From the NCBI GenBank assembly GCA_030704615.1, contig CM060734.1, positions 35,030,001 through 35,094,000 on the forward strand: DNA of 64,000 nucleotides, read 5' to 3'. Below are positions 49,691 to 64,000 of this stretch, one piece after another; position 1 is the stretch's first letter; every line of letters starts with the position of its first letter. The position numbers and the translations under genes were made by a program. The notes beneath the pieces were generated by a model. The model was not told the origin of the DNA and made no database searches. It was given only the letters and a program-made list of their open reading frames with translations. The stretch is from Takakia lepidozioides. Taxonomy: Eukaryota > Plantae > Bryophyta.

Positions 49691-50130
49691 TGCGTATATT
49701 TTCCTACCCGTGGGACTATGTGCATATATGAATATATCAATATATGATGCGAGTCGTTTGTGCGCTCTGTTGTAGAGAGAGACTTTGCGGAAACATGCAT
49801 GTTAATGAAGAAATGTGGTCAAAGTACCTTACACCGTTAGGCGCTGATTCCTGTGTTGTGCTTAGTCGTGCTCCCTAGTCTTATCTTCCTCTTGTGTTGA
49901 GCCAAAGCAAAGCAAGAGAGCCAATTGTCGTTTGAGGCCTGTTTTGTTTTGTTGGCGAGTCCGTCTTTCAGGGGCAGAGACTTTGCATCGTGTTGAAGTC
50001 AATGGAGAAAATGTGGTCAATGGACCTTACAGTGTGTCAAGAGTATGATTGGTCTGAAATTGCTCTTAAGTATAAACCACTTGTCAAAATTGTTGCTTCA
50101 ATGGACAGAGCCTCTCGCGGTTTGCGGCTT

Positions 50131-50802
50131 GTTTTGTTTTGTTTGTTTTGTTTTGTCACGTTGAGATGTCCCAAACCGTAGGCCCAGCCTTGGTGCTTTG
50201 TACCGTTGGAAAGCCCTCGATGAGGAGGGGTGCACCGTCTTGGTCTCATGATTTTTGGACCTGCGGTGTGGGAGATGTTGAATTTCAAGTACTTTTGGTC
50301 ATTGGAAACTCCCAAAAAATAGGAAAGTAGACATTCCTAGACAATGGTTGGAGCCTCAACAGCAGAGATATCAAGGAAAAGGTCTCCGGTTCAAATCAGG
50401 TCGTAGATTCCGTGGAAAAAAAACTGATTAGACTTAGATGACATTGGACATTTAGGCCAACGACACAGGCTACCCTAGTCAATATATGAAGGAAGCCAGT
50501 TTGTTTGTTTTGTTTTGTTTTGTAACGTTGAGATGTCCCGAACCGCGAGGCCCCAACCCTAATGCTTGGTAAGTTGGAAAGCCCTCGACGAGAAGGGGTG
50601 CACGGGCTTGGTCTCATAATTTTTGGACCTGTGATGTGATGTGGGAGATGTGAAATTCCAAGTACTTTTGGTCGCTCGAAATTCCCAAAAAATAGCAAAA
50701 TGGATTTTCCTGGAACAATGGTTGGAGCCTCAACAGGAGAGATCTCAAGAGAAAGGTCTCCGGTTCAAATCTGATCGTAAGCTCTCTGGAAAAAAAATGA
50801 TT
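50131..50802. repeat. Tandem duplication of a ~300-bp repeat unit (~365-bp period)
   Basis: GTTTTG..CGTTGAGATGTCCC..GTTGGAAAGCCCTCGA..TTTTTGGACCTG..ACAATGGTTGGAGCCTCAACAG..GGTCTCCGGTTCAAATC occurs at ~50131-50430 and ~50500-50802. Confidence 0.85.
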
Positions 50803-53800
50803 GGCCCTTCATTTCTCTTTTGTGCATGTGGATATAAATGTAATTGGGTCATTTTAGAATATTGGCGTTCACAATATGTTTTGTAGCCAAATAAGTGCGG
50901 CTAGCGGACGGTCGAGGGTCACGGCGTGGGAGCCGTTGAGGGGCGAAACCTGCGGACTTGGTGGAGGGTCTCATCTATGTGGTGCTGGAGGAACCAACTG
51001 GTCACATCGGGCACATGCTCTGGCACAAATTCTCCAAGCAAACCCGCGCGAAATGCATGTGATTGCGAGCTTGGGCATCAAGTCATGGCTGCAATATGCG
51101 TAGTATACGACGCATCAATACTTATATCGTAATTTGGTTTCATTTATGCTTACCAATCATACTATATTATTACATATATCAAATGTATTATGAATGAATG
51201 TTAATGAGAGGGGTAGAAAAAAACTCACCTTCGTCGCATTTGCAATCAAGTTTTTTCGCGAATGTTTTTCGACAATATGCGGTAGCCGCCTCGGTGTGGT
51301 CTGGTGCCGCCTGGCGGTATGCGTGCCCAACACTTAGTGCACCAACACTCAATCCTATTGGGGGGTCAAAGGTAACACTCAATCTTATGGGGGGGTCAAA
51401 GGTGGACGTGCGTGGGCATTGTACCTCTAGACTGTCAAGGGTCACACCAAGGGGTGGTCCGCGAAGGGGCAACCCGGCGCGCCCTAAACCCTCGATCCCG
51501 AAGTGTCACCATCCTCCGCATCACCTGAAATTTGGCCCCGGTCCCTTCTATGATTGTGTCCGCCAACCTGTATCGGATCAGTTGCAATGGATCGCTCCTC
51601 GCCACGAAAAACAGTCGCTCCTCAGCCACAATCGTTATGTGGTACTACCTCCCTATCCAAGAGGGAGACGAGTCAATGTTGACTAAGCAACTTCCATAGT
51701 AATCCCATTGCTACAAAGCCTATGGTTTGATTATATCATTCATCATCACACTGATTCCCAAGTTAAACTGCAACCAGAAACCTTATGTGGAGCTTACCCT
51801 GGTTTGCAAGCAAGATTCCCTAGAGTGTTTAATTTACGTGCTATGAAGAAACAAATTTACCATATATCAGGCTGATACCAGGCTATAAAAACCAGGCTAT
51901 AAGGTATTGCTTCAAAGCCTTATCAGACTGCAATCATATTGGTAAACACACTCAACAAGCATAAAACTCAAAAGTCAACATCTCAAGCACCTGAATCATT
52001 TACATTTTCTTGTACTCTAACCGTATAGGTTATGACAGCAGATGATTCCAAGAACTGAGATTGTAGTTTATGGCATCCATGTTATGATGAAACATAAGGA
52101 AACCTCAGTTTTATCATAGATCAAAACTCCAACTACAAAGTTGTACCCTGAATTGATCTACAACTAGAAGTACTGGAGCTTGAACAGTGTATGACCAGAC
52201 TGTCTCTCTGGTTAACACCTTTCAAAAACTAGGTATTCATAAACACATACCTAGCCTCTGAAAACAGGGATCTTTAAATGAAGCTTCCATATAAGAGCTG
52301 TTTCCAAACAAGTATTGTTACCAAGTGTGCCAGTCCACTGTATGTTTCTGACCAGTATAGTCAGTTGACGTTATGTTACTGTTTGAAACATGTAATTTAC
52401 TTAGAACCAGCATGAAATCCAGGGCAGAGCATATTAATTCATGCTTTTAGATTTCTGTCCCCTAGCCCATTAATCATAGCTGATTTAAACCCAGGTTCTC
52501 AGTGTAATATAATCAACCATTGGCCAATGCAAAATGACATCAGAATCCACTCTAAGTAGTGTAGATTCACTTGTGTTTTGTCAAAACAAGCTTAAAGAGA
52601 AACCAGAAACATCAGTCTCATAGAGTTCCCTGGTTCTTATGTGCTACTCATCTGAAGACAAACAGGGTGACTGATGATGACCTCCCCTGTCTCCTCCGAG
52701 CAACCTCATCTGTAAATGTCATGCCATAGTCTCCAATCTTCCATTTCTCCAATGCACAAGACCCTCACCTGTCGCCCGTCCCAAAAACAAACACAAAAGT
52801 GAGTGTTAGTGAGGAAGCTCGAGGTGCATAGCGGGTCTCTGCGCTTGCTATCGCTTTCCAAAAACCATGAAATTGCACCATACAAAAGAGACATCATGTC
52901 CAAGTTTATAAAAACTTTGAGTTCTTGAGGTAAGATTATAGCTACTGACATGAAAACATACATAACAAGGCATAGTATTATGTAATCTGTCTGCAGGGAT
53001 TCCAAGCCACATAAACAGGGTTATAACCAAATGCATCCGTGATATGCTCTTTGCTGGGTTCTTCACATGCAAAACACCCATAGGGTTACCACACGATGTA
53101 CTCCCTGCTGGGTTTTTCACCCGCTTTTGAGTTAGACCAAAAACATTCCCAGATGGTCGTTTATTGCACCTTAATAGCTTGCGGAAGAATTGCTTGTGAC
53201 ATGACTGATCTGAGCAGATCGCAGTAGGACACACAAATCGCAATACACACCGACCTAGCAGCTTCAATGGAACCAGTTTAAGAAAGTGTGTTCAAGAAAT
53301 ACTAGAGCCCTGGCAGCGAAAGGAAGCTCAAAGGGCTCTGAAAGCGAGTTGCCAGTCTGAACATCTTCCCCCGAAGCACTCATAAGAAGAAAGCCCCAAT
53401 TCTCTTCAAGGAAGCCTGCATAGCCATCATACAAGCAACTCCCTGTGGCACGTCTCTTTCAGAAATCGTGGAGCTCCCTGTGATGATGGACTTGCAGAAA
53501 CGGGGGCATCTTTGTGCGCCGCTTAGGTGCTTTTTTGTACCTGCTCTTAGAAAGCAACAGGCTGAAGGGAGTAACCCTATCCCTCTATTTTGATTTCCAC
53601 CATATCCCTCATAGCCCTATCTCGTCGAACTTTACTGATTCAAACAGGTCAAGCTGCATAAACGAGGGTAGCGGGCTGTTTGCCTGGTTGGTTAGAACTA
53701 CCGTTGAGGTGATACCAGATTATTTGTATCTTTCCTAACCTGGTCCAAGTGAGGCAGCGACTGTTCCCAAGAAATTTGTGCCCTCATTACGTTGATGTTG

Positions 53801-54433
53801 AGCAGGGCTGTATGTGCTGCGGGGAAAGAGAGATCTGGCCCACCACTCCAAGTTTTCATGCATTCAATCGATCATCCCAAAAATATCTGGATCTCTTTCT
53901 AGGGAAGACTGTATCGCAATTATCCAAGCAATCCCCTGCACGATAGGTATGATTCTGCCCTTCCAAGCGATTTATCCTGAAGCACTCGTGTCAGTAACAT
54001 CAGATCGCTTATGAGCAGGCCTGTGTAATCATGATCCGAGCACTTCCCTGTAGCAGAGAGGATTACTCATACCGTGTAGTACTCTGGCAGGTTTGCAGTG
54101 ACGTTGTCTTGCTCCAGAGTGAGCTTCGAGGCCTCCTGTGTAATCATCAAACGAGCAATTCCATGTGTAACAGAGAGGAATACCCATTCTTTGTAGTTAC
54201 CTTGGCAGGTTTATCGTGATCTTGTCGGGTTCCAGAACATATCAAAGCACGTTTTCTGGACTGTTTAAAAGATCTTGGTGTCCAAGAAAACCGTCTCTGG
54301 GGTAATCATGTCATGTACCTTATGGGCTAGGACACACTTGTCATCTTGTCATTGTGTCGCCAGTTTTGCAATATTCACACTGACATATAACCCTGCTGCA
54401 GATGAATCCCTTGTAGAAAACTTAGTCATCGTG

Positions 54434-54794
54434 TAGGGAATTCCAAAAAGGCCTTGATGTGAAATGCAGCGCAATTCACTTGATCAGATGCCAATTCAAT
54501 TGAATTGCGATGTCAATTCAATTGAACTAACCCTAATTTGCAATTCAATTGAATTGCTGACTGCAATTCAATTGAATTGTAATCTATAATTTTTAACGCA
54601 GTTTTGTATATAATATATATAATATATTATCATGTATATGTATATGTATATGTATCGTATACACATATACATACGAGAGTATAAGCTGAATATACATGCT
54701 GGCCCATCTATTCCTGCTGCCCGTCCATCCTTTGCTTGTGGCAAGGCCTAAGTCACGACATGAGTCGCGTAGCCTAAAGGAGAGATATATACTA
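54434..54794. repeat. Left TIR (361 bp) with palindromic CAATTCAATTGAATTG repeats
   Basis: Reverse complement of 61044-61367. The 16-bp palindrome occurs ~4 times on the left and ~2 times on the right. Confidence 0.92.
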
Positions 54795-54809
54795 CACATA
54801 TATACTAGT

Positions 54810-55057
54810 AGAGGTATCGTCATTAGGTTGTAGCCCTGTTTGATATATCTACAGAGGTATAGTATTTCATTTTACAAGAAAAGTTGGCCAAATTAATCTA
54901 TATTTATGCGGAGGTATCGTCATGAGACAGTAGCCCTGTTTAGTATACCACCAGAGGTATAGCGCCTGACTAACAAAGAAACCTGGTCAAATCAGCCTAT
55001 ATGCAGGTTGAGGTATCGTTATGAGGTAGTTGCCCTGTTTAGTATACCTACAGAGGG
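54810..55057. repeat. ~100-bp tandem repeat, about 2.5 copies
   Basis: GAGGTATCGT.AT.AG...GT.GCCCTGTTT.GTATA....CAGAGG at ~54812, ~54912 and ~55010. Confidence 0.75.
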
Positions 55058-55461
55058 ATTGGCAACGTATGCATTCTTATCTCTGTTTTTATCCCAGTCC
55101 TCGCTTGTTAGATTCTACAGCTGTTCATCGCGTAGCACTTGGCTACATGATTGTCTATTGTTTCTGGTTTACTCAATAAGAAGAGTGGGATAGAAATGTC
55201 AAGTGAGTTTTTCATGGTACGTGTCATGGTTGGGTGGACAGGAAGAGGCCAAGGAAGAGGCAGCAGCAGAACTGACACATTTGGTAAGGCAACCGTGTCC
55301 ATCCTCAGTATGAAGGATGCTGCACCCTCGGAAATACAAGATGCTTCAAGTAAGTTCAAAGAGCTTTCTTCTCTTTCTGGTGTGCTGGATATGTATGCGG
55401 AGGACAACTAATATCACCTTAGGTGCCAAGGGAGAAACAAACAACCAGACCCTATTTCATT

Positions 55462-55464
<3 letters not shown>

Positions 55465-55522
<58 letters not shown>
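55465..55522. repeat. (TC)29 microsatellite
   Basis: Direct reading. Confidence 0.95.
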
Positions 55523-55525
<3 letters not shown>

Positions 55526-57139
55526 TTTCTCCCTGTCCTCTAGGAAGCCTATTGACATTGGGTGGACTTGAAACGGGAGTACATTAATGTCTCTGTCACT
55601 AAATGCCGGCCTTCTGACCTCGTGTCCTTGTTTGTTTCGACCTTAAGCGTTTTGCTTCAGGTAAGGTAGTGCATTGGATTTAGTTGGAAAACTTGGGGCC
55701 TTTCCCTCTTTAGAATATGCCTACACAGGCCATTCCCTGCAACTCCCTGGAGTGTGATCTCTGAATGGTAACAAGCGGACTCCTACCGCTTGGGGGCAGC
55801 CCCTCCGCCCAAATTGGGCAGTCGTATGCTCTGTCTAGCATACTCGGCACTTGGGCTCGGGTTGGTTCCTGTGCTTAAACTTATGGCCTGCGAAAACAAT
55901 CAAAAATTTAGCTCCTATCAACAGGAATTGGTTACTTATGCCAAATCTAGGGCTTCATGTGTAGTTTTTGGGGTGAATCCCAGGATGGACCATGTGTCCT
56001 TTAAAACTACATGCTCTACCTTAGGCTTGGATTTCATGGTTAATGGTACCATCTCGAGACTTGATAACAGGGGTACGTTGAAGGTTGCAATGACCAAAAG
56101 TGCTTCTAATAGAGTCCCGCATCAATTCAATCTCAAATAAGTTCGTCCGTGATTTCTTGTTTGACAATTGTGAAATTATCAACAAGGGTTTGAGGTACGA
56201 GCATAGTATCTGGCTAAAACTGAATTTGAAGGGCGGCATGAGTACTCTGCTGGACCTCTTTGTCCGTTGTGTTTACATGCCACAGAGGGGACCCTGTGTG
56301 CTGACGCAGACAAGGCCTCACAAGTTTTGAAGCTGGACTGTGCTTCATTCCTTGCCAAAGGTCAGGTGGTACTATTGGGGGACTTCAATGCCTGGGTGGG
56401 CAAAGGGATCCATCAGGACGATATCATTGGACCTTTTGGTGAGGACGAGCTGAATTCTAATGGCAGACGGTTAATTAACTGTCTAGAAGAACTTCAGCTT
56501 TTGACCTTGAATAACAGGACAAGAGGTGACCAAGTGCAGTGGACTCGTGAGAAACCCCAAACTGGGGAACGTTCCATTGTGGACTATATCATAATGGACA
56601 AAATTTTGTTCCCCCAGTGTGCCGATGTGTTGATCGACAGAACTGATATTGGTACCTCTGACCACTTGCTGGTTTGGACTGACATCAAAAGGTGTTTTCC
56701 CACCACCAAGAGATCTGTGAAACGTTCGATTCGGAAGTGGCGCATAGAAAAATTCCACAATGAGGAGGTCAAGGCTGAGTACGTCCAGGCCTTGCAAGAG
56801 GCTCTCCCTCATTTTGTCCAATCGCTCCAAGAACTTCAGTCACGCTCTGTTAACGCAATAAATGAAGTCGAAAGAGCAGTGGACTCTTGGGAGAGTTTCG
56901 TTTCCTCCGTGGCTGACAAGATCATTGGGAGGAAACTAATTGTCTGCGGTAGAGCAGTTAGTTGGTGGACTAATGAGATTAAACTCAAGATAGCTGAGAG
57001 AGGAGCCCTCTATAAACAGTGCTGCAATTTGGAAACCAACAGAGAATTGTGGGCGAGGTACTACCAGCTCCGTAAAGATATCAATCAGCTTGTTAGGTCT
57101 CAGAAAAAATTATACTGGGACAAGTATACAGTGAAATAA
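55523..57139 (+). mobile_element. Truncated non-LTR retrotransposon (LINE) fragment: APE endonuclease and linker, no RT
   Basis: HSIWLKL..LFVRCVYMP (56100 frame) is frameshifted into ORF 56267-57139 with VVLLGDFNAWVG, N.NG..L, SIVDYI, TSDHLLV, WWT.EIK. Ends abruptly before RT. Left boundary approximate. Confidence 0.85.
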
Positions 57140-57313
57140 ACTCAAACCACCATGGTGGTAATGACAAGAAATTCTGCTTGGCCCTTCAACGTTTGTAGTC
57201 ACGCTCTGTAGAGGTATTGAGCACAAGGGGAAGCAATATAACTTGGCATAGGGGCTGATATGGACTTGACATTGATCTTCCATATGCACACCTCTCTCCA
57301 TGTGCTGCTCATC

Positions 57314-57518
57314 CACCACTCTACCCACTGCCTGCGTATCGCTGGTTTGACTAAGTGACTGGTCACTAGATCACCAGTCACACCTTCATAGGAGTGGGCA
57401 TGTGGCTTGCAAGTGTTGGGCTGCCAATAACAAACCCACTACAACGTTGCACTACAACCATAATCTCATCACTATTGCAGAACTCAGCATACATGCTCTC
57501 GATTCCCACTCCAGCCTT
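57314..57518 (-). pseudogene. Captured flavodiiron protein (FLV/FDP) gene fragment
   Basis: 57518-57384 translates KAGVGIESMYAEFCNSDEIMVVVQRCSGFVIGSPTLASHMPTPMK, ending at a GT, and matches the flavodoxin-domain GF.IGSPTL.GHMPTP motif. 57349-57314 QTSDTQAVGRVV resembles the start of the FLV flavin-reductase domain. Confidence 0.8.
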
Positions 57519-58204
57519 TCAAATTCCTCAACTTCCATTCAGCATCCCATGAACCCCACATGCAGCCCGAGTGTTATTACAAGCACGTTATGTGCTTTGG
57601 TAAATACTGTTGTTGGAATGAGGCAAAGCCCTCAAACCTTGGCCAAATGTTTATGCAAACCTCTTTAAACTGCTTGTGAGCTAAATGGGTTTGATGTGCA
57701 TGCCAGGGCTAGCTCCATCTCATTTTTTGGGGGACCCTTTGGGAGACAGATGGCTTACTCAGAAGTGCTTCAGCTTCCTCTGATTCACTGGCAAAAGAAA
57801 TATGGCTAGCTCTGAAAGAAACAGACAATTTCAAACCTCACAATTGATGAATGGCTTCCCCTGCATCATCATGTACTCCCCTGGCACTAGTATCTGGCCC
57901 CCATGACACAACCCCAGAGAAAACAAAAGACATGTTCATTTCGAGAATTATCTCCAATAATCTTGTTTCGATACCCTTACAAAGGTATCATGTTGCAATT
58001 GGGATGTGTGTTCGATAGAGAGTTTAATATATCAACTCTTAGACGTTGATACTCTTACAGTGGTATCATGTTTGGTATATGTACATAGCCATATTTTGGC
58101 ACTATAAGGGCTTGGCAGTATGAAATTGGTTAGTGTCTCAAGGTGCAGATGAAACATGCTAACATATTTAGATTGTAAGCAACACCCACCAGTCAAACTC
58201 ATCC

Positions 58205-58344
58205 TCAGAAGAGATTGATACACAAAAATTTCTCAGGGTCGTTGGTGCGCAGGCTTTTGTCAAGGGCTTGATATCATCATCGGTCAACTCAAAGTCAAAG
58301 ACATCAAGGTTCTACTTCAATCTCTCCATCTTGTCTGACTTAGG
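58205..58344 (-). pseudogene. Captured aldo-keto reductase C-terminal fragment (sorbitol-6-P dehydrogenase / mannose-6-P reductase-like)
   Basis: PKSDKMERLK*NLDVFDFELTDDDIK / ALDKSLRTNDPEKFLCINLF*, matching the AKR PKS...RLKEN..VFDFEL motif. One stop (58312-58314) and one frameshift. Confidence 0.8.
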
Positions 58345-58688
58345 ATTTTTATTACTGTATGCAAAATTCTTAGATTATGAATAAAGGGTTCTTGAAAATG
58401 AGGCAAGTTGGTCATCATTGTCTCATATGTGGGGCAGACAAAGATTGTTGGAGATAAAAGGCGGCCTCATGAGCCTCACGCTGTGCACTTCCCAATGAAA
58501 CCCAACAATTTCACAACCCTCCAGAGATCGTACAACCCAGGCCCTGCCCCCAAATAGTATGGTTTGATGTTTAGGGTGTATGGTTCAATATGGACAATGG
58601 ATATGATGATGACATTTATTTAACAGAAATCCTCAAAGTACGTGACATAAAATAATTATCTTTGAATGTGATTGTCCCACTTATTCAG

Positions 58689-60381
58689 TTAATCACAATT
58701 ACATACAAGAGCTTGTGTAATTAAAAGTTGGAGAGCTTCCCTACTTAACACAGTATTACCAATGAGGTCCAATTGATCAAAATATCTATGTTCATGCGTT
58801 GCCAAACCACAATACCGAGACATGTAGTAGTGGAGATGAAAACAAGAGATCGAATCCTTCCCAACCTTTCCAATTTCATAAGCTTGTGCACGGACACGAA
58901 CCATGTCAGGAATGAGTTCAGCTCCTTTGGTAGGAAGGTCATGCAAACCACCTGCACATCGCCACCTTTGATTCCCACGAGGCCCCAAGTCTTGGTTACC
59001 AATGTGTCGGGGGTCTTCCCTGAATCGTGGGTCATCAATAAGGTGGCTGGTCCATCTACATGATCAAACACATCACCACATTAGAATAACATTCCAATGT
59101 AAATTGTAGCTTAACAATGAAAGTACAAACAAGAGAAAACCATGAGCTTACCCATGCAAAAGTTCATACTCACGAAAGAAATGAGCAGGAACATGTGATC
59201 GACGATATCGACCGTTTTCATTAATCGTGCGAACTCGATGTCCATTCCAAATCTTCACGTATTCATCAACAGCTTCTTGTAGTATGGGCATATATATGTC
59301 AATAAAAGATTCTCGTTGTCACGGATCGTCCATATCCAATAATCCATCATTGACCATTGTTTGGAAGCAATTTTTGTAGTAGAACATTACCTTCTCCCAT
59401 AGATGCCGCCAAAAGTGTTCAATCCTCTAGCGTGGTGATTACACCACACAAAGTATTAGGAATATGCACAACATTACACACTCAATGATTAATAAAGATG
59501 AACCAAGAAATATGACAGAAACGTAAAGTTGATATGCAAGATAGAATTGTATAGAACACTAACCTGATTGTGTGTAGAAGACCCAGTCAAGTACGGATTG
59601 GGTGTTTCAGAACGTGTGGCTTCAATGTGTTGTTTTATAAGAGAGTGCTCTACTGCAAAATCAGATCGAATTCGTAAAGGTGCTCCAAACTTGGAAACTG
59701 CATCGTGATATCCTTTGAAAATGGTTTTTTCTTTCTTGTTTCTTGCAACGTTCGCCCATAAAACAAAATGAGAGGCCCCATCAATGCCAGCATGTACTCG
59801 AAGACCAAACATAACCAATTTGTCATAAGCTGCACCTCGAATTGCACACATGTTTTAGTTTGCCTACAATTTTGTGCGATATGTAATGCAAGAAAACGTC
59901 TTGCATGTGCATCTTCAAATAACCTTAAGATGCATGAGATAAAATACTTACAGTCAATGTGCCATAGAGCCATAGGCATTGTCACATTATACTGAGTCCT
60001 CCGAATTGCCTGTGCCCTTCTCCTACGCTCATAATGGTAGGGTGAGATGATTTTCAAAGCTTCCCCCACCTTCCTTCGAGAAATCCGCCAATTTGACCTC
60101 CTTAAGGCAGATTGCACTGTTCTCATTCCCCAATTTGTCCCATTCTCTTCAATAGGAAGTAACTCTTGAATCTTTTCACACAAGCGTTGGACACTCAATT
60201 GATGATGAACTTTGAAAGGAGACCCTTGGACTTCTGATAACAATCTTCTCAATGGTCGTACATCATCAAAAGAAAGGGCAGTGGCGATTGATTTCATTGT
60301 GGCACCCTCATTCAACATTGCTTCCACATAAAGTACTAAATCATCCACTACTTTGTCACCATCCAAATGGTTGTTTTCCAT
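58689..60381 (-). pseudogene. Spliced IS3/IS481-family (IS3EU-type) DDE transposase, 4 exons, one premature stop
   Basis: Exons 60381-59952, 59829-59564, 59426-59152, 59055-58689 join in phase at GT-AG sites. They give an HTH-like N-terminus, WG.RTVQSALR..RISRRKV, LWHIDSYDKL..GLRVHAGIDGASH, PLRIRSD, GSSTHNQRIEHFWR, WNGHRVR. In-frame TGA at 59321-59319. Exon 4 and the start codon are less certain. Confidence 0.88.
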
Positions 60382-61043
60382 GCTCACATGATCTGTCTTA
60401 TCTCTGCTTAATAGCCCCAGTGCCAATGCCTTCGACCTTGCCCTTGTTGTAATTGTTTGCTGTTAATTCTGTAGTCACTGCATCCACTCACACACTCCCC
60501 ATAGGACTTACGTCACTAAAGTTCACATAGGCTATCAAGTAGATGAACCAAATGTACTTTGAAACAACAACTACTCTATCCTAAAATGTATTAGCAAACC
60601 ACAGTACACAGTGTGGGCAGGTTGAAGACAAACCATGTGATCAAGCTCTTTCTTTCAGTGTGTGTGTTGAGGAGCGTTTGGTAACCCACTCTACTACCCC
60701 TAAAGTTCTCTCCTCAAAACTCATGAGTTACCTGCACGTACACAAGAACTACAGCTTTAGCTAAAATGATATCTTTATCAATGATTGGGGGAACTCATGC
60801 CAATATGGGAATGTGCTTACTCATGGGCAGATCTTGTCATTTGGTGATCCAAGAAAGCTTCCATCATACATAGCGCCACCACCGCTCCACCACCGCTCAA
60901 CCCTAAACTTGTTGTTGCATTCTTCTCTACGTTACTTCTCGTCCTCCAACTGATTTGATCCTTTCACTTTTAGGGCACCTCTGCCCTAAAAACCCTTCAT
61001 CACTTCATTTCTCTCTCCCTTTCCCTCGCTCTCGCTCTCTCTC

Positions 61044-61367
61044 TAGTATATATCTCTCCTTTAGGCTACGCGACTCATGTTGTGACTTAGGCCTTACCAC
61101 AAGCAAAGGATGGACGGGCAGTAGGAATAGACGGGCCAGCATGTATATTCAGCTTATACTCTCGTATGTATATGTGTATATGATACATATATATATACAT
61201 ATACATGATAATATATTATATATATTATATACAAAACTGCATTAAAAATTATAGATTACAATTATTAGGGTTAGTTCAATTGAATTGGCATCGCAATTCA
61301 ATTGAATTGGCATCTGATCAAGTGAATTGCGTTGCATTTCACATCAAGGCCTTTTTGGAATTCCCTA
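61044..61367. repeat. Right TIR (324 bp)
   Basis: Ends ...GGCCTTTTTGGAATTCCCTA, followed by TSD ATCGTG. Confidence 0.92.
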
Positions 61368-61754
61368 ATCGTGAGTCACAGGGGAACTATTTTGTTCCAT
61401 TGCCCTCTGTAGTGCTGGGATCCATCCATGCAGCCTCATTAACTTAGATCAACCTATGTCGTCTTGGGATCAACCCCCATGCTGTGTTAAATCATATGAT
61501 GGCCAGGTCATGTATTTATCTTAGTTCAGATAAGTCAGGCCTTTGTAAAAAAGTTTTTTTTCAAAAAAAGTTACACACTTAAGGGTTACACCACTTAAGC
61601 AAATAGGTCATTAGTTCAGATAAGTCAGGCCTTATACCTTCTCCCATTCATCTTAAATGGGAGCTGTAAGGTCCAGGGATCAAATCCCTTAGTGCTTAGT
61701 ATTTGTCATCTTAACCAGGAATTTTTTTTTTTTTTGTAATAAAAAATCTTGTTA

Positions 61755-61960
61755 TCCAAGAGAGCCACCTCTGGGATAATCATGACAGCGCATGTCATGT
61801 ACCTTATGGGCTAGGATACACCTGTCATTTTACCATTGTAATGCCAATTTTGCATACTGATATGTAAATTTGCTGCAGATTAGTCCTTCGTAGAAACTCA
61901 TTCATCGTGACTCATAGGGGAACTATCTTGTTCCATTCATCCCATGTAGTCCTGGGATCA
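61755..61960. repeat. Paralogous empty copy of the transposon target sequence
   Basis: Colinear with 54281-54433 joined to 61374-61420 (CATGTCATGTACCTTATGGGCTAGGA.ACAC..TGCTGCAGAT..GTAGAAA..TC-ATCGTG-A.TCA.AGGGGAACTAT.TTGTTCCATT). Confidence 0.88.
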
Positions 61961-62207: not shown

Positions 62208-62455
62208 CAGTGTTGATTTCCTGTTTTTCATCCATACCAGATGAATTTTGGCAATGTTTCATCCATCCTCTAACAATTTTTCATCCATACCGGATGAGCT
62301 ACCAAGGGGGACACTGAATTACCTCTAGGATGAGTTTTGATTTTTCATTCCTCTTTTATTGACTTTCATCCATACCGGATGAGTCACCAGAGAATGAGGA
62401 ATTACCTCTATGGGGGTTGCCACTGACATCATGTTTTTCATCCATACCAGACAAA
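62208..62455. mobile_element. Probable left end of a hAT-like element with subterminal TTTCATCCATACCRGATGA repeats
   Basis: Starts CAGTGTTG like the hAT TIR at 49571. About 4-5 copies of TTTCATCCATACC[A/G]GA follow. No partner TIR seen in the window. Confidence 0.4.
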
Positions 62456-64000
62456 TTTATGTTTTTATGGTACCACGTGGTAGAACTACTCCTGGACCCA
62501 CCAATGCTTTAGTTCAATGGAAGAACTGGTTTTTTTCAGGTCACAATTTTCGCACTACATTAGTCTATGTCCCCTTGTGTGGCCTGATAAAAGTTTTTAC
62601 CAAGTGGACAGAGGCTAAGGCGGTTAAGAAGGCCAACGCACAGGTAACTGCTTATTTCATTTGTGAGTATATCTAGAATAGAGAATGGAGCTGCATGAAA
62701 AATGTAATATAGAGATGGTAGGAGTATTATGCGGATAATGTGCAAATAAAGGGAGCCGACAATTACTTAAATGCTCTCATTACAAACAGGTACGTAAATA
62801 TTTATAGCTATTTTTTTTTTTTTAGCATATGTCGGTAGGGCAATGTCAATTTGGCATTGACAACCTTGACAAATTAGTGCGTTGAATTACCTGTGAGGAT
62901 GTAAACCGTTGTCGTGGATGTTATTCCTATTTTTTCATTCTGCTGATGGATTTTTCCAATGGATGAGCTCATGGATGATATTTTTTCTCTGTCATCTAGA
63001 CCGGATGATGTGTACAGCTGTTTATGGCCCTGAACTGATCTTAACTACCCCTAATTATGGTTAATTACGGTGTGAAACCCTAACTCTTACCCTAAAACCT
63101 AATTTTTAACCTAGCTACGGATGAAATCCGTCGGGTTTGAGGGATGTTATGTTTATTGTTCATCCTGCGCGGATTAAAAATTGGGCAAATGCCCTATGTC
63201 GTCTCTCCCGCCATCAAAAGCACGACTCGTGCTTCTGAGCTCGCGGGGAGAGCAATATGGCGTCTGCGTTTTTGTTACTGCCCTGTTTGCTGCATCATAC
63301 CCGTGCTGGGCAATCTCATGGGGATGCGCAATGGTGGCGCTTGGTCTCTCTTGCATGCGGGAGACAATGTTGTGAATGCATCATCTTGTTCCCTCCTCCG
63401 ACCTTTAATTTTTGCAGCGGCGCCTGTGTTGGGAAGTCTCTCTCCCTCTCTTTCTTAACCTTGCAAGCTTGCTTGTATGCCTCATTGCTTCTTTGCTTTG
63501 CTGGAGGCGACTTGCTGGTGGTAATGGCGCACAGCTCTCTTCGCCAATCGCTCAAGGTGCTTTTGGTGACTAGGGTTCCTTCTGTTTTTGTCTTCATCTC
63601 TTGCTTTTGAAGTTCTTAGTTGACATTGATGACAAGTGTGGGGATATGTGATTCACCTGGGGTTCCACAATCCTCACTAACTTGTTGGTTTTTTTGGGAG
63701 CTTGTGATGGGACCAGATGACGATTCCCACTTGCTTTGAATTTTCTTGAGCATGCAGATGTGGATGTGGGCAGAGGAGCCCCTTGTCTTGTTGCGTCTTA
63801 ATATGACTCATGATGACACCAGCCTCGATTTCGGCCCCTCTGCTCCTAGCCTGGCATGCTGCCGCTTCTGTAAGGCTTGTGTTTTGCTGCCGTCTATGGG
63901 GCATCTCAGTTTCAAAGGCCTGTTTTCTGAAGTTTTGCATCCAACCTTTACCTTGTCTTTGGATCCCTGACAGCAGATCCTGTGGATCACTAGGCTAAGT

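Follow-up and report, generated by a model that had tools for sequence, protein, structure and literature searches.

Fragments of a flavodiiron and an aldo-keto reductase gene in a putative GingerRoot/IS3EU transposon of the moss Takakia lepidozioides

The window, a stretch of 64,000 nucleotides of contig CM060734.1 of Takakia lepidozioides, contains an element of 6934 bp at 54434-61367 (Table 1). It has TA..TA ends, starting with TAGGG and finishing with CCCTA, and a 6-bp target-site duplication (TSD), ATCGTG, on both sides. The arms of the terminal inverted repeats (TIRs) are 97-98% complementary, except for 37 bp extra in the left arm. A paralogue of the flanking repeat (approximately 61790-61940) carries a single ATCGTG and no insert, the empty site lying at approximately 61880-61940, and the borders of the element are thereby fixed. 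The element thus occupies one unit of a local repeat (flanks 54300-54433 and 61368-61940), of which more units may exist at 53400-54240. A search of Rfam across the element gave no matches. Outside the element, a unit of about 370 bp is present in two tandem copies (81-91% alike) at 50130-50800, and at 62214-63008 there are five short dispersed repeats that share a CATCCATACCGGATGA-like core and may be subterminal repeats belonging to a different transposon.

Table 1 Features of the element and its borders (positions in the window)
Feature	Positions	Strand	Basis
Left target-site duplication, ATCGTG	54428-54433	.	Sequence at border
Left TIR, 361 bp, begins TAGGG	54434-54794	+	Inverted-arm comparison
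Three tandem subterminal repeats, ~100 bp each, 75-80% alike	54799-55059	.	Self-comparison
Exon-like piece, 42 nt, clean AG/GT borders; candidate host capture or LINE leader	55242-55283	+	Sequence
High-copy LINE fragment, endonuclease domain, 3' side cut off	55540 or earlier to ~57200	+	PF14529, E=3.2e-6
FLVA piece 2: AVGRVV exon, first 22 nt, after GCAG acceptor	57310-57331	-	Moss genomic comparison
Putative hybrid intron, 52 nt, GT..AG, 9-bp inverted repeat	57332-57383	-	Replaces ~0.9 kb (two exons + introns) of moss FLVA gene
FLVA piece 1: complete exon of the flavodoxin domain (148 nt) with moss-type AAG acceptor, GT donor and two TGA codons	57384-57531	-	Protein and bryophyte genomic comparison, RNA contigs
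Piece of another dispersed repeat, higher copy number	57771-58102	.	Read-contig depth
AKR gene 3' end, from the PKS motif through the stop and 12 nt into the 3' UTR	58193-58345	-	RNA contigs, bacterial AKR alignment
Transposase last coding exon	58689-59055	-	RNA contig continues to 58620, beside AATAAA
Transposase exon, catalytic E (RIEHFW)	59152-59426	-	Homologue; RNA contig
Transposase exon, integrase core (RSDFAVEH, GSSTHNQ)	59564-59829	-	PF24764, E=1.4e-14; RNA splice to upstream exon
Transposase first coding exon, start codon at 60381, with the first catalytic D in its terminal WHID	59952-60477	-	Homologue and RNA contigs
~74-nt match to abundant RNA contig	60633-60706	-	X8 contig, depth ~152; end derived from binned depths
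Right TIR, 324 bp, finishes CCCTA	61044-61367	-	Inverted-arm comparison
Right target-site duplication, ATCGTG	61368-61373	.	Sequence at border

The transposase gene lies on the minus strand and has four coding exons (60381-59952, 59829-59564, 59426-59152 and 59055-58689), which were searched exon by exon; continuity of the reading frame was derived from the exon lengths (430+266+275+367 nt = 446 codons). Besides the PF24764 match of the core, a homologue in a public contig (P0097/L003) showed 57-71% identity per exon with intron positions in common, and no relatives emerged when metagenomes were scanned with the transposase core. A probable 5'-UTR intron has its donor near 60731 and its acceptor at 60478. 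Contigs of X6, a probable RNA run, were 97-99% identical to the transposase exons and one was spliced exactly across 59951-59830, indicating that the transposase family is transcribed. These contigs come from a sibling copy of the element, which is transcribed and spliced, X6 being presumed RNA. The copy at 54434-61367 is interrupted by a TGA codon in frame (59321-19; Leu in the homologue L003); it has no intact transposase reading frame and is not an autonomous element. The earlier note on this DNA, made from the sequence alone, had proposed that the element keeps its own transposase gene, which holds for the family but not for this copy.

The TA..TA termini, the 6-bp TSD, the TIRs and an integrase-like DDE transposase are all characters of IS3EU and GingerRoot elements, which Kojima and Bao (2023, PMC10045372) place in a single lineage characterized by TA..TA ends and 6-bp TSDs. 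When the transposase was compared with the DDE region of Sl-GR-005 printed in PMC6839031, 55 of 115 residues were identical, as counted by eye, and RSDxAVEH, TGSSTHNQ and IExFWRHL were shared. Judged by these sequence characters, the element is a GingerRoot/IS3EU cut-and-paste transposon.

Pieces of a flavodiiron (FLV) and an aldo-keto reductase (AKR) gene had been reported between the TIRs, downstream of the transposase and co-oriented with it, and the coordinates and strands bear this out. Since the pieces are too short, neither gave a match in Pfam, and PDB, plasmid and local comparisons were used instead. The 45 codons of 57384-57518 (minus strand) matched Synechocystis Flv1 (6h0c, E=1.1e-7). 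This stretch was matched by 91 library proteins, with plant FLVA proteins reaching 32 of 49 amino acids, and the full-length plant matches highest in identity to piece 1 had moss-type endings such as TPMK of Ceratodon. The host's own FLVA protein was absent among these matches, the best of which was the 32/49 one; a homologue search with the 45-amino-acid piece and exact-protein look-ups gave no matches. In the FLVA loci of Marchantia, Ceratodon and Sphagnum one exon of 148 nt begins with the last base of a Ser codon and finishes at the donor after TP(M/V/I)(K/Q), and piece 1 is flanked by GAAG, common to both moss introns, and by GT. The 45-codon flavodiiron piece ending at a GT donor, as first described, is therefore real, with the exon starting earlier, at 57531, and two TGA codons near its start (57530-28 and 57521-19). 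Over this exon the cargo has borders identical to those of the moss and liverwort genes (MpFLV1, Sphagnum, Ceratodon) and 63-75% DNA identity to them, but with only 170 nt of coding sequence and two nonsense codons it cannot give a working flavodiiron protein.

Only part of the second FLV-like piece that had been proposed was retained. Its exon portion is AVGRVV(D), at 57331-57310, which agreed with Sphagnum FLVA genomic DNA in 24 of 26 nt, a score reached by 0 of 300 shuffles, and a chance likeness was rejected on this moss-gene comparison. The 'QTSDTQ' half was discarded, as the parent gene has an intron there. No tblastn match to piece 2 was obtained with MpFLV1 and no RNA contig aligned to it. 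In Marchantia, Ceratodon and Sphagnum AVGRVV begins the exon two exons downstream of the 148-nt exon, 0.9 kb away in the mosses. The 52 nt separating the two pieces in the element begin with GT and end with GCAG; within them, 57354-57381 holds a perfect 9-bp inverted repeat, possibly filler DNA of deletion repair. Because piece 1 corresponds to a conserved exon with its acceptor and donor, and the start of piece 2 coincides with a conserved acceptor, the splice-site positions of other bryophytes point to capture at the DNA level followed by deletion. The simplest reading is that a genomic FLVA stretch of about 1.1 kb was captured and that an internal deletion then fused two introns.

The AKR piece is broken as well. 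The segment 58344-58267 (PKS..FDFELTDDD, with the stop read as X) aligned with the PKS..ENLDVFDF C-terminus of annotated bacterial aldo/keto reductases with scores of 91 and 87, against a shuffle maximum of 48 (0 of 2000 shuffles equal). The captured tail is presumably like that of plant mannose/aldose-6-phosphate reductases. Contigs of the parent gene covered 58193-58345 at depths of 90 in X6 and 252 in X8, both probable RNA runs, with at least 255 unmatched letters beyond this segment, on either side of it in X6, the 3' overhang in X8 being 8 letters. These contigs have WGIERKTVVV upstream of PKS, a different 3' UTR and 10 extra bases after 58266. In the captured copy a TAG at 58314-12 stops the frame early, and 10 bp are deleted after 58266, between two ATCAAG repeats, which puts a frameshift before the tail that ends at the natural stop, 58207-05. 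The identification as an AKR C-terminus with its stop is thus supported by the RNA contigs and the shuffles, whereas the intact run of about 45 codons first described is not, owing to the TAG and the deletion. The piece falls within one coding stretch and fits DNA capture and RNA capture alike.

The cargo adjoins a LINE fragment of at least 1.65 kb, oriented opposite to the transposase, whose left end lies at or beyond a (CT)n run. Its depth was about 40-180 times that of the element body, and other copies of the LINE continue past 57197. As it has no 3' end, it is not a normal retro-insertion. Neither this fragment nor the TGA in the transposase had been mentioned in the earlier note. Its position beside the FLV and AKR cargo would fit an alternative origin, in which mRNA was the source of the fragments and a retro-copying step, performed perhaps by this LINE, preceded their insertion into the element. 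The limits of FLVA piece 1, which are almost exactly those of the exon, also agree with such an origin, as do the 52 nt before AVGRVV, which translate like a Sphagnum linker exon (E=0.09 with a redundant FLV set). However, bryophyte FLVA mRNAs read TPMK-(D/E)ALG and VEQ-AVGRVV where the element has GT and GCAG, neither piece has a poly(A) or a TSD, and a LINE fragment lacking its 3' end is the opposite of what retro-insertion leaves. Contigs of two probable RNA runs covered about 147 nt at the FLV exon with the flanks uncovered; coverage ending at the exon limits agrees with a spliced parent mRNA, and the contigs stop short of 57383-57332. We therefore regard capture from mRNA as very unlikely, and DNA-level capture as the reading to which the splice sites point.

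Other contents of the element are of mixed nature. The dispersed repeat at 57771-58102 has short GATAC..GTATC hairpin units, and similar GGTATC motifs occur in the 54799-55059 repeats and at 57207. The earlier note had listed 57837-57895 as a possible further capture; it lies inside this higher-copy repeat and was rejected as a host exon, since unspliced contigs run across its borders at a depth typical of repeats. For the other exon-like segment listed there, 55241-55282, the AG/GT borders were found (at 55242-55283), but the segment had no match in Pfam or Atlas, and no usable result came from Atlas for either 55194-55310 or 55772-56137. The RNA contig matching 60633-60706 continues into unrelated sequence, and the minus strand of this segment reads like a 5' UTR ending at ATG; this segment, located in the probable 5'-UTR intron of the transposase, was probably captured from a third host gene. 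No parent of the cargo was found in the 64-kb window.

The number of loaded copies was estimated from contigs of the DNA run X1, contig depth being only a rough guide to copy number and 54795-55539 being excluded from the read-contig comparison because of the (CT)n run. For AKR, the parent form accounted for a depth of 27.5 out of 542 and the deleted form for about 515, a ratio of approximately 19. For FLV, contig depths were 740 against about 25 (approximately 30 times), and the transposase stood at about 600. These rough ratios suggest about 20-30 near-identical cargo-bearing copies, so that capture preceded amplification. With parent sequences in the same species, many copies and no poly(A) or TSD of their own, the two fragments uphold the claim of capture from unrelated host genes. 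The pieces could alternatively be remains of the host region that happen to lie between TIRs, or later insertions peculiar to one copy. A mosaic internal region with other repeats, and one sample differing at the cargo junctions, might be read in that way. Yet a single X1 contig at a depth of about 740 covers 57347-57887, the deleted AKR form stands at about 515 against 27.5 for the parent, and TIRs, TSD and empty site together delimit one mobile unit. The fragment junctions are free of poly(A) and TSDs, as the earlier note required of pieces that are not independent later insertions, and we consider this alternative extremely improbable.

The sample that differs is X5, a plant metagenome which may contain a related species. 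One X5 contig follows 58604-58344 and continues into 707 nt of other sequence, breaking exactly at the AKR border, as with different or extra cargo; another follows 57512-57207 and then has 308 nt unlike the LINE junction of the element at 54434-61367. These departures at 58344 and 57207 indicate that the cargo varies between copies, populations or close species. In X1, a joint of 58253 to 60576 was seen at a depth of 240, with 2-bp microhomology and a short side of only 28 letters. Such a joint would be expected of a non-autonomous derivative in which the cargo was kept and the transposase lost.

Chimeric read-through transcripts had also been envisaged. None into the cargo was seen among the contigs of X6 and X8, which show presence and cannot prove absence, and the last transposase contig stops at 58620. 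In both runs no contig lay over 58346-58619, the bin depths were fully accounted for by transposase and parent AKR contigs, and the depth at the AKR marker sites was all of the parent type. With stops in both fragments and a transposase RNA contig that does not reach the cargo, exon shuffling into a new protein is unlikely. The cargo might nevertheless act through siRNAs on FLVA and the AKR gene, or through chimeric transcripts, and be retained for that reason. Some 20-30 copies with fragments aligning to the parent mRNAs at 80% or more would favor such a role, as would the transcription of the family and the lower methylation of cargo-bearing GingerRoots reported in PMC6839031. We consider a functional cargo unlikely, as both fragments have nonsense or frameshift changes, and the parent-type marker depths and the gap at 58346-58619 also speak against it, on data that record presence only. 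Most likely, the element carries the cargo as a neutral passenger. A more elaborate picture, in which an active, transcribed GingerRoot family amplifies the loaded element, swaps cargo at fixed internal junctions between copies or populations and yields small RNAs against the photoprotective FLVA gene of the moss, is distinctly unlikely.

Taken together, we conclude with high confidence that a GingerRoot/IS3EU transposon has gathered short genomic pieces (FLVA, the 3' end of AKR, LINE, repeat and probably a host 5' UTR) and been amplified. What was observed are the borders of the element, parent sequences in the same species, the FLV splice sites, fragment decay, many copies and a spliced family transcript. 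The cargo would have entered as DNA copies made when breaks within the element were mended, through template-switch gap repair, a mechanism proposed for Pack-MULEs. Deletions may then have trimmed it, with a loss of about 0.9 kb from FLV that produced the hybrid intron and of 10 bp from AKR, between the ATCAAG repeats, after which the family transposase would have multiplied the loaded element to the present 20-30 or so copies. This is a useful case for the study of capture, since the parents are known, two introns appear fused, one deletion lies at microhomology, the copies number about 20-30 and some junctions vary. The mechanism by which DNA transposons capture genes is still open (PMC6839031), and a family whose transposase is expressed could contribute to testing it. 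Copies of the element are also an annotation hazard, giving false FLV and AKR matches and mis-mapping small RNAs.

The element resembles Pack-MULEs, and also Pack-CACTA and Helitron capture, in having short, multi-gene, putatively intron-containing fragments in a DNA transposon, and Pack-MULE-type capture probably uses the same repair-based mechanism. Pack-MULEs, however, have a Mutator-type transposase and a 9-11-bp TSD, whereas the present element has an integrase-type core, a 6-bp TSD and a transposase gene inside it; Pack-MULE identity is ruled out by the core and the TSD. No published case of FLV capture came up in a literature search.

The closest parallel is with the GingerRoots of the clubmoss Selaginella lepidophylla (Cerbin et al. 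2019, PMC6839031), where 22 of 77 intact elements carry gene fragments of 84-1654 bp. According to that paper, these fragments hold introns as well as exons, several elements drew on two genes, the DDE motif is kept in 6 of the 22, and expressed relatives exist in mosses. The moss element shares with them the TA..TA termini, 6-bp TSD and TIRs, a size within 3.9-12.9 kb, a closely similar DDE region, fragments with exon and putative intron parts, two-gene cargo lying beside the DDE region, and a lineage present in mosses. The earlier proposal of a new exon-shuffling vehicle therefore does not stand, because the same behaviour, including multi-gene, intron-containing fragments with the DDE retained in some elements, is described there. 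The differences are TIRs of 324-361 bp here against 100-150 bp, a moss instead of a clubmoss host, FLVA and AKR as cargo, neither gene being named in the text consulted, one cargo layout apparently amplified to about 20-30 copies, and a spliced transposase transcript where expression in S. lepidophylla was scarce. Neither a new element class nor a new function is established. The modest novelty lies in the longer TIRs, the moss host, the FLVA/AKR cargo and the apparent amplification of one layout, and the case extends GingerRoot gene-fragment capture from clubmoss to moss.
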